Shown piece by piece: positions 19,358-22,721 of a DNA stretch of 43,415 bases. Location of the stretch: the NCBI GenBank assembly GCA_002269645.1, contig NIVC01000908.1, forward strand, positions 1 through 43,415. The letters are read 5' to 3'. Below the pieces are notes generated by a model, which saw only the letters and a program-made list of their open reading frames with translations, was not told the origin of the DNA and ran no database searches. Every line of letters starts with the position of its first letter. The stretch's first letter is position 1. The position numbers were made by a program, and so were the translations under genes. Origin of the DNA: Macrostomum lignano (lineage: Eukaryota).

Positions 19358-22300
19358 GCTGCCGCATCCGCAGCCTCCGCTTGGACAAGTTGGCCACCTG
19401 GATGAGCACCCGCAGGTCCAGGCACTCCTTCTCCTTGTTCTGCAGCTCCGTCATCAGCCGTTTCTGCCGCTCCAGGCTGAAGGCGGCGAGCCGCTGCTGT
19501 TTCTCCAGCAGCCGCGCCAGCTGACGGCGCTCCGACCAGCTGACGCCTGCGAGGGGGGGGGTTGGCGAGGGAAGTTTATTGTGACTGCGCTCGCGTGTTC
19601 AGCGCTGAGTCGGCTCACCTCCGGCCAGGTGCAGAATCCGCAGCAGTCGAAGGCCGATCGCTAAGGCCAGGAGGTCCCGGATCAGCGGGCTGACGGCGGC
19701 GAAGTGTAGGGAGAAATTCAGGCAGCAGCTGAGCACTGAAATCAGGGCGTCCACAGCCTGAGGTTGCGGGGTTGGGGTGAGATGATCATCATCATAATCA
19801 CCTTTACCGTCATCATAATCATCATCATCATCATCATCATCATTAGCATCATAATCATCATCATCATCATCATCATCATTATCATCATCATTATCATCAT
19901 CATGATCTTCTTCTTCTTCTTCTCCGTTTATCGCCTTGCCGCGTGGAGTGAACAGCGTCAGGCTTCACCGCAAGTGCGTTTGTGTCGCGCCATGTTTGTC
20001 GCCGATAACGTTCTTCCGCACTTGTCGCATTCTGCTGTCTTCCCTCGGTATTTTCTTGCTCTTCTCTTGTTCTCCTCCATCTTCGGTGGACTGTGGTGTT
20101 GTTCTTTACATGTCCTTCTATGCCTCGCTAGGTTCGATTTTACGATTGTGCTTCCACATTGCTGACATTTTACTCTTGACGCATCTATTTCCGTCTCGCC
20201 TTGGCACACCTTCTCATGGTTCGCCAGGGTCGCTTCCTGTCGGAACTCCTTGTCGCATTTGTGGCATCTAAATTTCACCGGCTCTTTAAACACGCGATGC
20301 ATCCTCTTTTGGTGGATGGTTAGTCCGCCCTTGCTTTTACACACTTTGCCGCAGAGTTCGTACTCGCATTTGAAGCCATCTCCAACCTCTCTCGGGTTCG
20401 TTTTTACGTGGTACCGTTCTTGACTTCGTTCGATCAGGCTGTTGTTACTGTCCGTCTTGGCCTTTTTTCCTTGCACTCTCTCCCACTCTTGTAGGTGTAC
20501 AGTCCGCTGGTGTACAACGTTCCGCCAGTGTTTCCTGTCTAGAACGTGGCGTTCGATGTCTTGCGGTTCCATACCGGCTTCCCAGATGAGGCGCTTCCAG
20601 TAGGATATGGTGTTGTTTTTCCGTTTTTTGCGCTTAGGGATCCTTTCCAGGCCTCTGTACCACCCTAATACGGCTTGCTTTATTTTTCTGTCGTCTTCCA
20701 TCCGTAGGACGTGGCCAATCCTTTTTAGGTGACTTTTCTCAATCTTTGACCTTAATGACACAACACCTAGTTCGTTGCGGATATCTTGCATATTTACTCC
20801 CAGGCTTTCCATTTCGCGCAGCGGTTCTATTCTCTTGCTGGACCAAATGTTGCGGTATGTTTTGTCGATGAACTGTTGCATTTTCTTGATTTCGCCGAGC
20901 AGGAACGGGCGGGTGTTCGCATGGAACAGGAGTACACTTTCCACGCACGCCTCGACCACTTTAGCTTGTGTGGTCTTTTTCAGGCGGCATCGATGGAACC
21001 TTTTCCTGATCGCATTCCACGCTTTGGCGGCTCTCTGGATTCTTTGCTGTGTGTCGTATCTCCTATCCATCCACGACCCTAGGATGCGAGTTTTACCTCC
21101 AACGGATGTTCCTAGGGCCATCTCCTCCTGCTTTTCGTCATTTGTCAGTTCTTCGAACTTCTTCATATTCTCTTTGGTCGTTGTTAGGCTTCTCGTCAGT
21201 TCTCTGTCATTGCCTAGGATGGTGGTGTCGTTTGCAAAGAGCGATGAGGTCCACTTGACCGTTCGCATCTCCGAGTTGTACTGGTTGATTCTCTGAGGTG
21301 GCAAGTAGTGGCCGGGTAGGTACGTCCATTCCACTCCGCAGCTTAATCCTCTGCTGGCCGCTTCTGTCTCCCGAATTTCTTCCGCTTTCCTGATGCTCGC
21401 CTGGTGGTAAATGTTAAATAATATCGGGGAAGTTGGGCATTCCTCGCGTAAGCCTCGCTCGGGTAGCCATGTTTCGCTTGATTTCTCCTTGCCTTGCACT
21501 TTATACGCGGTATGTTCATGCAGGTCCTTCAGTTTTTCGATCGTCTCTTGCGGCATCTTGTACGCTTGGAGGATTCCCCACAGGATCGGCTTGCACACTC
21601 TCGGATATGCCTTACGGAGGTCTAGGAGGATTGCCGTTTCTGTATCTTCGATGTTGCAGTCTCCTGATGCTCTTTTTGCTTCCAGGTACTCGGCAATGTC
21701 CTCGTGCATCCTGGTGAATATCTGTGCGTTGTCCGCCGTCGATCTTCCACTTCGGAAGCCGTTCTGGTTGTCATCATCATCATCATCATCATCATCATCA
21801 TCATCATCATTGTCATCGTCAGCATCTAGCCAACTCAAAACACCCACTCACATCGATGGCAGTCAGCCGGTTTCGTTTCCGACTTCGAGAATATCGAGCT
21901 AAGCGATAAATTGTCTGCAGAATGAACGAATTAAAAAATCTCAAGTTTAAGGGCAGACGAATATTTTAATATTTAATAACTGAGAGTGGCGCAGACCTCA
22001 ATGACAAACACCACAGAGAGCACCAGAACTGCGTAGAATGCCTTGCGGCTCTCTGTGCCTGAAATTATTGTTGCGAGGACATATTTGGCGTGTCTGTCTG
22101 TCCGTCTGTCTGTCTGTCTGTCTGTCTGTCTGTCTGTCTGTCTGTCTGTCTGTCTGTCTGTCCGTCTGTCTGTCTGTCTGTCTGTCTGTCTGTCTGTCTG
22201 TCTGTCTGTCTGTCTGTCTGTCTGTCTGTCTGTCTGTCTGTCTGTCTGTCTGTCTGTCTGTCTGTCTGTCTGTCTGTCTGTCTGTCTGTCTGTCTGTCTG

Positions 22301-22721
22301 TCTGTCTGTCTGTCTGTCTGTCTGTCTGTCTGTCTGTCTGTCAGCAGGCATTCAACCAACCCTGAGCCCCAGTCTGTGGCTCGCCGCGGCCAGGTCCAGG
22401 GCCAGCAGGTGGCTGACCAGCAGCAGCTGCAGCCACACCAGCAGCAGCGCAGCGCAGTCCAGCCTGGCGGCGCGCATCCCGGAGAGCTTCTTGGCGCCGA
22501 TTCTGTGAAGAAGGGAAGCTTAAAAAACCATCAACATGCCATCGAATGTCATAAATCTGTCAATTTCAGTTTTGAAACCGCTGACTCACTCGATCGCAGC
22601 CACGGCGGTTCCGCAGTCAGTGGAGCTGTCAGCCACGGGAGCCATGATCGGAGGGGCTCGAGCAGCCGACCAGCGCTTGGTCGGGAACTGCTTTGGATTG
22701 GTTTGGCCTTGAGATGTGCGC
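19358..22721 (-). CDS. Hv1/TMEM266-like voltage-sensor-domain protein (S1-S4 plus C-terminal coiled coil). Exons 22721-22590, 22502-22357, 22058-21997, 21914-21852, 19757-19619, 19546-19358; true start and end not fixed
   Basis: The spliced product has S1 [20 protein letters not shown]2 [15 protein letters not shown]3 [16 protein letters not shown]4 [15 protein letters not shown], then [14 protein letters not shown]...[15 protein letters not shown]. This aligns without gaps inside the helices to remembered human Hv1. All junctions are GT-AG and in frame, although the S1 exon needs the weaker donor after 22357 rather than the one after 22361. Confidence 0.75.
19785..19905 (+). repeat. (ATC)n microsatellite flanking the 3' end of the RTE-like LINE; matching tract at 21771-21815
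   Basis: Directly visible on both sides of the element. Confidence 0.9.
19907..21770 (-). mobile_element. 5'-truncated non-LTR retrotransposon, RTE-like (RT C-terminal part plus C2H2-type zinc fingers), in an intron of the Hv1-like gene
   Basis: Motifs [40 protein letters not shown] (normally FADD), RILGSWMD and [19 protein letters not shown]. Stop at 19958-19960, then a short 3' UTR and a (GAA)5 tail. The clade call comes from motif similarity only. Confidence 0.88.
22090..22342 (+). repeat. (TCTG)n microsatellite, about 63 units, intronic
   Basis: Directly visible. Confidence 0.97.

Follow-up and report, generated by a model that had tools for sequence, protein, structure and literature searches.

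The window analysed here, of 43,415 nucleotides (nt), is the complete contig NIVC01000908.1 of the flatworm Macrostomum lignano (assembly GCA_002269645.1), and its minus strand carries, in the region 19358-22721, a gene that we named ML3. When the six minus-strand exons of ML3 (Table 1) were joined by scripted splicing, a 220-codon open frame was obtained, with AG acceptors and GT donors at all borders, and the encoded product comprised the voltage-sensor helices S1-S4 followed by a coiled coil. The first-pass annotation, made from the sequence alone, had proposed this exon chain, and it stood up to comparison with two further paralogues of the same genome, ML1 and ML2. As judged from its predicted protein, ML3 is the third paralogue in a fast-evolving part of the Hv1/HVCN1 family that is specific to Macrostomum; it appears intact, is unannotated and has no pore or enzyme domain. 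In ML3, the Asp that serves as the selectivity filter of Hv1 is replaced by Gln.

ML1 (P0013, 342 amino acids (aa), BOX15_Mlig005453g3) was recovered by profile search, and its UniRef name begins 'Voltage-gated hydrogen cha'. P0006 and P0001 are ML1 models without exon 4, and P0001 is also without S1. ML2 is composed of P0005, its N-terminal part, and P0002 (accessions of the pair A0A1I8IQA6 plus A0A1I8F2W9), the split between the two entries falling exactly at the exon 4/5 boundary. The names of these two entries, 'Cation_ATPase_C domain-containing' and 'DMAP1 domain-containing', are misleading.

ML1 was rebuilt on its own locus (L001) as a gene of eight exons, whose introns have the phases 2,1,0,0,1,1,1. 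The five intron phases of ML3 (2,1,0,0,1) were the same as the first five of ML1, and three of the introns were at identical alignment positions. Exon 1 of ML3 ended in the same phase as exon 1 of ML1, and the distance from the initial Met to the RL[DE]C motif was 35 residues in both ML3 and ML2 (P0005). Exon 2, covered from 22492 to 22385 by tblastn with P0012, carries Gln44 (CAG, 22429-22427) at the D112 position of human Hv1 (hHv1), together with His50 and Asp55 (hHv1 D123). Exon 3 ended after the Glu of FVIE/LLLE, at the same place in ML3 and ML1. The counterpart of exon 4 measured 57 nt in ML1 and formed the C-terminal end of P0005 in ML2. Exon 5 had the same length in ML3 and ML1 (139 nt) and encodes D112 (hHv1 D174), S119 (S181) and N123 (D185), with the S4 motif RLLRILH at 19649-19629. 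Therefore, the shared phases, the shared exon ends and the length of exon 5 support the whole exon chain of ML3.

Two overlapping donors, at 22357 and 22361, sit at the end of exon 2 within a GGTTGGTT duplication. The 22361 donor was rejected, as it breaks the frame and leads to a premature stop in exon 4. The 22357 donor, on which the first-pass model had relied, was the sole phase-1 GT that keeps the frame, and since the corresponding ML1 intron is of phase 1, the choice is settled in its favour. Moreover, ML1 uses a donor, GTGGAA, which has the same +4 to +6 bases as GTTGAA of ML3. The choice between the two donors could regulate productive splicing.

At the 3' end of the model, a phase-1 donor (C/GTGAGT, the slash marking the exon border) starts at 19357, after exon 6, and read-through past 19358 with the intron retained meets the stop TGA at 19352-19350. 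ML1 likewise shows a GTGAGT donor of phase 1 after its exon 6, about two residues further on than in ML3. Because of this agreement, ML3 probably continues past 19358 into more exons. A tentative exon 7 (Table 1) runs from phase 1 to phase 1, as exon 7 of ML1 does, and bears DSGHASVGSHPGSP where ML1 has DSGHSSDSSPDSP. It was the top one of 92 phase-compatible candidates, its likeness to the ML1 tail being weak (shuffle p ~0.03); that tail extends for about 100 aa after the coiled coil. A DSGHxS motif was common to the ML1 tail (L001 13454-13639) and the tentative exon 7 (17655-17774), and its resemblance to a beta-TrCP-type DSGxxS phosphodegron is speculative.

The relationship of the encoded protein was then considered. 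In an exhaustive phmmer search with ML3 among 1.84 billion (1.84e9) representative proteins, five matches had E < 1e-3. Three were M. lignano proteins (P0001, 4e-20; P0002, 6e-19; P0005, 8e-4), and the two remaining ones, at 8.6e-5 (P0003) and 3.1e-4, were canonical Hv-type proteins, in which S1 has Asp and S4 reads RLWR/RMWR. ML1 and ML2 were the only close relatives of ML3 among these representatives (35-45% identity); nothing with 50% identity or more to ML3 was present in the collection searched, where ML3 itself is unannotated. Low-complexity candidates dominated the word-indexed searches, which yielded 0, 2 and 7 proteins. The single ML3 protein found no match in Pfam, in PDB sequences (phmmer) or in a word-indexed homologue search, and no canonical Hv1 from M. 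lignano turned up in the present homologue searches. In a 2012 survey, three M. lignano transcripts with HVCN1 homology were reported, unassigned to individual paralogues (PMC3447372).

When a Macrostomum profile was aligned by hhalign with a profile of nine canonical Hv proteins, the match reached 98.4% probability (E 7.6e-15), spanned S1-S4 and ran through the Hv1 coiled coil. The top PDB sequence matches of the Macrostomum profile were the Hv1 entries 5OQK (E 0.015) and 3WKV (0.05). The phmmer, hhalign and PDB matches thus agree on homology to Hv1. With a Macrostomum hidden Markov model (HMM), run on sequences from the PMC10377628 supplement that are noisy from optical character recognition, P0003 and six molluscan Hv-type proteins scored 41-55 bits, human Hv1 20.7 bits and invertebrate C15orf27/TMEM266-like proteins 12-31 bits. 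In a neighbour-joining tree of the same noisy sequences, ML1, ML2 and ML3 formed one clade on a long branch with 100% bootstrap; the C15orf27-like group, the Saccoglossus Gln61 protein and the Schistosoma Hv pair fell outside it. The deep position of this branch beside the outgroup is probably due to long-branch attraction and was left uninterpreted. The distinct family that had been proposed for ML3 therefore stands as a separate, well-supported clade, but one that consists of three paralogues in one flatworm genome. Against Pfam Ion_trans (PF00520), ML3 gave no match up to E = 1 and P0013 none at E up to 0.01; the canonical P0003 does match this domain (E 1.2e-7).

The AlphaFold2 (AF2) model of ML3 had four helices, with S4 prolonged as one long helix (predicted local distance difference test, pLDDT, 76.5). 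This single helix covered residues 134-219 with a block-mean pLDDT of at least 90 from residue 171, and the coiled coil was continuous with S4 both in the model and in the hhalign match. Foldseek against the PDB returned weak matches with voltage-sensor domains at the top (best Ci-VSP, E 0.17), which agree with such a fold without deciding the matter. The ML3 model is 220 aa long or slightly more, and ML1, at 342 aa, has no other Pfam domain. No further homologous exons and no pore or phosphatase exons were found near ML3 within the window. The protein thus fits the earlier description of a voltage-sensor-only Hv1 homologue with a coiled coil.

Residue calls were made from MAFFT and hhalign alignments with human Hv1. 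The changed positions were D112 (Q44 in ML3), E119 (L51), D185 (N123), W207 (L148), R211 (H152) and N214 (G155); the kept ones were D123 (D55), F150 (F85), E153 (E88), K157 (R92), E171 (D109), D174 (D112), S181 (S119), R205 (R146) and R208 (R149). Every call of the first-pass annotation, S4 motif included, was reproduced. Gln44 lay opposite hHv1 D112 in every alignment and the 116 position was Val48, leaving ML3 without a pore-facing carboxylate in mid-S1. In S4, RLLRILH replaces the RxWRxxR/K signature, with Leu for Trp and His for the third Arg. The absence of both hallmarks, as asserted at the outset, was thereby borne out. The charge-transfer centre and the S4 arginines were kept, as F85, E88, D112, R146 and R149 of ML3 fell in invariant columns (alignment A4). 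The hydrophobic-gasket residues V41 and F85 were also kept, and the Zn-site residue His140 was aligned with Phe75.

The three paralogues shared some of these changes and differed in others. D123, F150, E153, D174, S181, R205, R208 and G215 were retained in ML1, ML2 and ML3. All three had Asn at the D185 position and His at the A118 position. The residue at W207 was Val in ML1 and Ser in ML2, that at R211 was Thr in ML1 and Gln in ML2, and that at N214 was Gly in ML1 and Arg in ML2. At the E119 position both ML1 and ML2 had Gln. From these columns, the Trp-less, two-arginine S4 and N185 are features of the whole clade. The loss of the filter Asp is private to ML3, because ML1 and ML2 keep Asp there; the non-canonical filter, which had been taken as a trait of the proposed family, is therefore not one. 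By the same comparison, the clade-wide loss of W207, R211 and D185 is older than the change from Asp to Gln.

In ML3, it was mainly the helices and the coiled coil that were conserved. Compared with ML2, its identity was 52% in S1, 57% in S2, 48% in S3, 47% in S4 and 44% in the coiled coil, and the loops were poorly conserved; among the paralogues, the coiled coil was conserved at 44-45%. No rate acceleration was seen, with 20 replacements unique to ML3 and 22 unique to ML2. In addition, three M. lignano copies of ML1 differed at 7 sites, all of them (7/7) synonymous, suggesting that the family is under constraint.

It has been known that human, dinoflagellate and insect channels lose their proton selectivity and become permeable to anions when a non-acidic residue occupies the D112 position, and that a filter needs at least a carboxylate facing the pore and an Arg or Lys as its partner (PMC10377628, section 3.1). 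Since ML3 has no Asp or Glu at the 112 or 116 position, we infer from this published filter work that it is not a canonical proton-selective channel. The S4 Trp, the third S4 Arg and D185 had already gone from the whole branch, and in ML3 the S1 filter Asp has in addition given way to Gln and E119 to Leu. Without a pore-facing carboxylate, ML3 would no longer conduct protons in the canonical, selective way, and would most likely act as a 'silent' or modulatory voltage-sensor subunit that retains F85, E88, D112 and two S4 arginines. Its coiled coil would serve to form dimers, either of ML3 alone or together with ML1 or ML2, which bear the Asp. Such a role is favoured because the charge-transfer centre, the two arginines and the conserved coiled coil are kept. 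A partnership through the coiled coil, with ML1 and ML2 as the likely partners, is plausible since the coiled coil is conserved among the paralogues. Overall, we give a probability of about 0.4-0.55 to ML3 being a voltage-sensor subunit without proton selectivity that forms dimers, alone or together with ML1/ML2.

Several points weigh against this reading. Both the heterodimerisation and the non-conduction of ML3 are things we infer, and D112Q is not among the filter mutants cited. The loss of the filter Asp itself speaks against a functional gene. D55 is the sole external acidic counter-charge left in ML3, and for this reason even voltage sensing may be impaired. The gene model was read from genomic sequence alone, the Q44 codon in one genomic copy only (NIVC01000908.1), and the search downstream for a terminal exon gave nothing convincing. 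ML3 was missing from the NCBI and the UniRef/WormBase protein sets in the collections searched. The in-frame donor TTG/GTTGAA is weaker than an out-of-frame donor, AGG/GTTGGT, 4 nt upstream. Finally, a sense-strand retrotransposon fragment occupies intron 4.

The last of these features, as well as the weak donor, the loss of the filter Asp, the want of annotation in either M. lignano protein set and the reduction of the external acidic residues to D55, would also be expected if ML3 were a silent duplicate, or one decaying into a pseudogene, that is under relaxed selection and yields no functional protein. However, the six-exon frame is open, the splice sites are canonical and the intron phases are conserved. 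ML3 has evolved no faster than ML2, and what is conserved is the helices and the coiled coil, not the loops. A donor used in ML1 carries the same +4 to +6 bases as the weak donor of ML3. The absence from annotation is weak evidence, for the protein collection is apparently without M. lignano transcript assemblies, given that even the pyrophosphatase of the window was found only on two NCBI contigs, and the absence of ML3 therefore says little on its expression. On balance, decay of ML3 seems unlikely.

ML3 might instead conduct non-selectively, as an anion-permeable or leaky sensor pore like the neutral D112 mutants of hHv1. The anion permeability of human, dinoflagellate and insect Hv channels with non-acidic filters (PMC10377628, section 3.1) speaks for this, as does the retention of R146 and R149 (hHv1 R205 and R208) and of the gasket residues V41 and F85. 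Nevertheless, W207, R211, D185 and E119 are changed as well, which makes extrapolation from single mutants unsafe, and Gln is not among the cited cases. Moreover, some neutral substitutions do not conduct; D112V, studied by Musset et al. in 2011, reportedly gives no current. A non-selective pore in ML3 is thus improbable.

Less probable still is the movement of protons by another route, namely a His shuttle that uses either H152, at the R211 position, or H50 of S1, which is conserved throughout the clade. The precedent is the Shaker channel, in which His in place of S4 arginines is said, from the work of Starace and Bezanilla, to turn the sensor into a proton carrier or pore, and H50 (hHv1 A118 position) is indeed present in all three paralogues. 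However, ML1 has Thr and ML2 has Gln in the place of H152, which hence is not a conserved functional residue, so the shuttle suggested earlier for this position found no comparative support. H50 lies six helix residues from position 44 and therefore on another face, and ML1 and ML2 have it alongside Asp; it did not evolve as a replacement for the Asp.

That ML3 is an ordinary TMEM266 orthologue, a voltage-sensing phosphatase (VSP) or a fragment of a larger channel can practically be dismissed: TMEM266 (C15orf27/HVRP1) is likewise an Hv1-like sensor that carries a coiled coil and a disordered tail and is neutral at the filter position (V111), but its orthologues are reported from vertebrates only, are more than 80% identical in S1-S4 and have three S4 arginines (RxxRxxR) and M185 (PMC6392501), and compared with this published description of the vertebrate protein ML3 is from a flatworm and has Q44, N123 and two S4 arginines, while the Macrostomum clade is separate from the invertebrate C15orf27/TMEM266-like sequences in the tree, the voltage-sensor domain of Ci-VSP scored -0.6 bits against 41-55 bits for the molluscan Hv-type proteins with the Macrostomum HMM, neither ML3 nor ML1 has a phosphatase domain, and full-length ML1 ends at 342 aa, with no pore or phosphatase exons near ML3.

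Table 1. Exons of ML3, repeats within its introns and other elements of the window
Feature	Position	Strand	Description
ML3 exon 1	22590..22645	-	56 nt; from ATG; 18 residues + 2 nt; ends phase 2
ML3 exon 2	22357..22502	-	146 nt; S1; weak phase-1 donor G/GTTGAA
ML3 exon 3	21997..22058	-	62 nt; S2; F85 and E88 (hHv1 F150, E153)
ML3 exon 4	21852..21914	-	63 nt; S2-S3 linker, 21 residues; R92 (hHv1 K157), D109 (hHv1 E171)
ML3 exon 5	19619..19757	-	139 nt; S3, S3-S4 loop, S4
ML3 exon 6	19358..19546	-	189 nt; coiled coil running on from S4, residues 157-218
Tentative ML3 exon 7	17655..17774	-	120 nt; both borders in phase 1; preceded by ttacag (acceptor) and followed by GTAAGT (donor); product LQQRPSQLSCDSGHASVGSHPGSPVVVESAKFERVDEAAP
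(CAGA)n microsatellite	22091..22342	.	63 copies; fills most of intron 2
5'-truncated non-LTR retrotransposon open reading frame, intron 4	19958..21847	-	sense orientation; reverse transcriptase, then C2H2 zinc fingers
(GAT)n microsatellites	21771-21826 and 19785-19907		flanking the intron 4 retrotransposon
ETS-domain exon	4571-5011
Mariner transposase fragment	8965-9540
UBE2Q-like ubiquitin-conjugating enzyme	11418-14054
Near-complete non-LTR retrotransposon	26414-30859	-	endonuclease + reverse transcriptase open reading frame of 1021 codons, then RNase H open reading frame of 458 codons; not annotated as gene
Ankyrin-repeat SOCS-box (ASB-like) gene	33575-36359		annotated at 463 aa
Inorganic pyrophosphatase	38673-39542		intronless, 289 aa; annotated on NIVC01000908.1 and NIVC01000907.1

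As for the surroundings of ML3, the window is eukaryotic in character and contains microsatellites, minisatellites, fragments of long interspersed nuclear elements and mariner, and spliced genes (Table 1). The retrotransposon in intron 4 of ML3 has a 629-codon open frame with four C-terminal C2H2-like zinc fingers. Because (GAT)n brackets it on both sides, the arrangement suggests that the element inserted into, or targets, such a repeat. Long minisatellite arrays at 3194-4469, 12416-13492, 17833-18358, 23421-23886, 24656-25535 and 35178-35638 give rise, on either strand and in more than one frame, to spurious open reading frames 100-370 codons in length. Another tandem repeat, at 16349-16614 with a unit of ~21 bp, was ~75% similar to arrays in the pyruvate carboxylase gene beside ML1 (L001-L003, about 17800-18850); this repeat is a dispersed satellite family of the M. 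lignano genome. The annotated start of the pyrophosphatase differs from the in-frame ATG found upstream, at 38556. On NIVC01000907.1 there is a copy in reverse orientation (about 325-346 kb), with 99.45% identity over 4.9 kb; presumably it represents another haplotype, or else a duplication of recent date.

Part of this family was already known, ML1 under an automatic Hv name and a Macrostomum Hv accession in the supplement of PMC10377628. New here is a third paralogue, so far unannotated, that alone in its clade of unusual S4 has lost the filter, and the M. lignano gene set accordingly misses a family member. The natural Hv selectivity filters tested so far are Asp, or Glu in some insects (PMC10377628); Hv-derived proteins without Asp and Trp, such as that of Saccoglossus, have been noted before and are uncharacterised (PMC10377628, section 2.2). 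ML3 offers a filter-less case in a transgenic model flatworm tractable by RNA interference, beside two Asp-bearing paralogues that share its unusual S4. The three proteins thus allow a clean comparison that shows the contribution of the carboxylate to a sensor with two arginines and no Trp, and let one ask whether Hv-type coiled coils support regulatory heterodimers. A bolder and doubtful proposal is that ML3 is a naturally evolved 'filterless' Hv subunit which co-assembles with ML1/ML2 by way of the coiled coil and tunes their gating or adds a non-proton (anion or leak) pathway. If true, the paralogues would be a natural D/D/Q mutagenesis series in one animal, and the Hv family would gain its first silent-subunit system.

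Compared with human Hv1 (PDB 5OQK, 3WKV), ML3 shares the S1-S4-only sensor, the passage of S4 into a C-terminal coiled coil, the F150/E153/D174 centre, and D123, S181, R205, R208 and G215. It differs in having Gln at D112, no W207, His at R211, D185N, E119L, N214G and His140Phe, is ~24% identical to human Hv1, and falls below the Pfam Ion_trans threshold. Within the Hv1 family, the lophotrochozoan Hv-type proteins P0003, P0004 and P0014-P0018 score best, and they share with ML3 the S3-S4 loop motif (A)VSxxxRD. With ML1 and ML2, ML3 has in common the genome, the exon-intron plan, the losses of W207, R211 and D185, the His at A118 and the coiled coil ECxDLRxLxxxAxLSxxRL; in contrast, the two paralogues have Asp at the filter and Gln at the E119 position, where ML3 has Gln and Leu.

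The Hv-like protein LOC102802600 of Saccoglossus kowalevskii, one of several 'beyond typical' Hv derivatives, has Gln for the filter Asp and no S4 Trp, and a proton-selective function was judged unlikely for it (Chaves et al. 2023, PMC10377628, section 2.2). Like ML3, it is Hv-derived with Gln at the filter and a Trp-less S4. Nevertheless, it is 18.6% identical to ML3, stands apart in the tree and was not among the phmmer matches; the two proteins are of independent origin. TMEM266 is an Hv1-related, non-proton-conducting sensor; its filter residue is neutral, its coiled coil dimerises and its C-terminus is disordered, and ML3 likewise combines a neutral filter position with a coiled coil. The coiled coil mediates dimerisation in both Hv1 and TMEM266, and TMEM266 does not functionally co-assemble with Hv1 (PMC6392501). 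However, TMEM266 is a highly conserved vertebrate protein with three S4 arginines, whereas ML3 is a lineage-specific flatworm paralogue.

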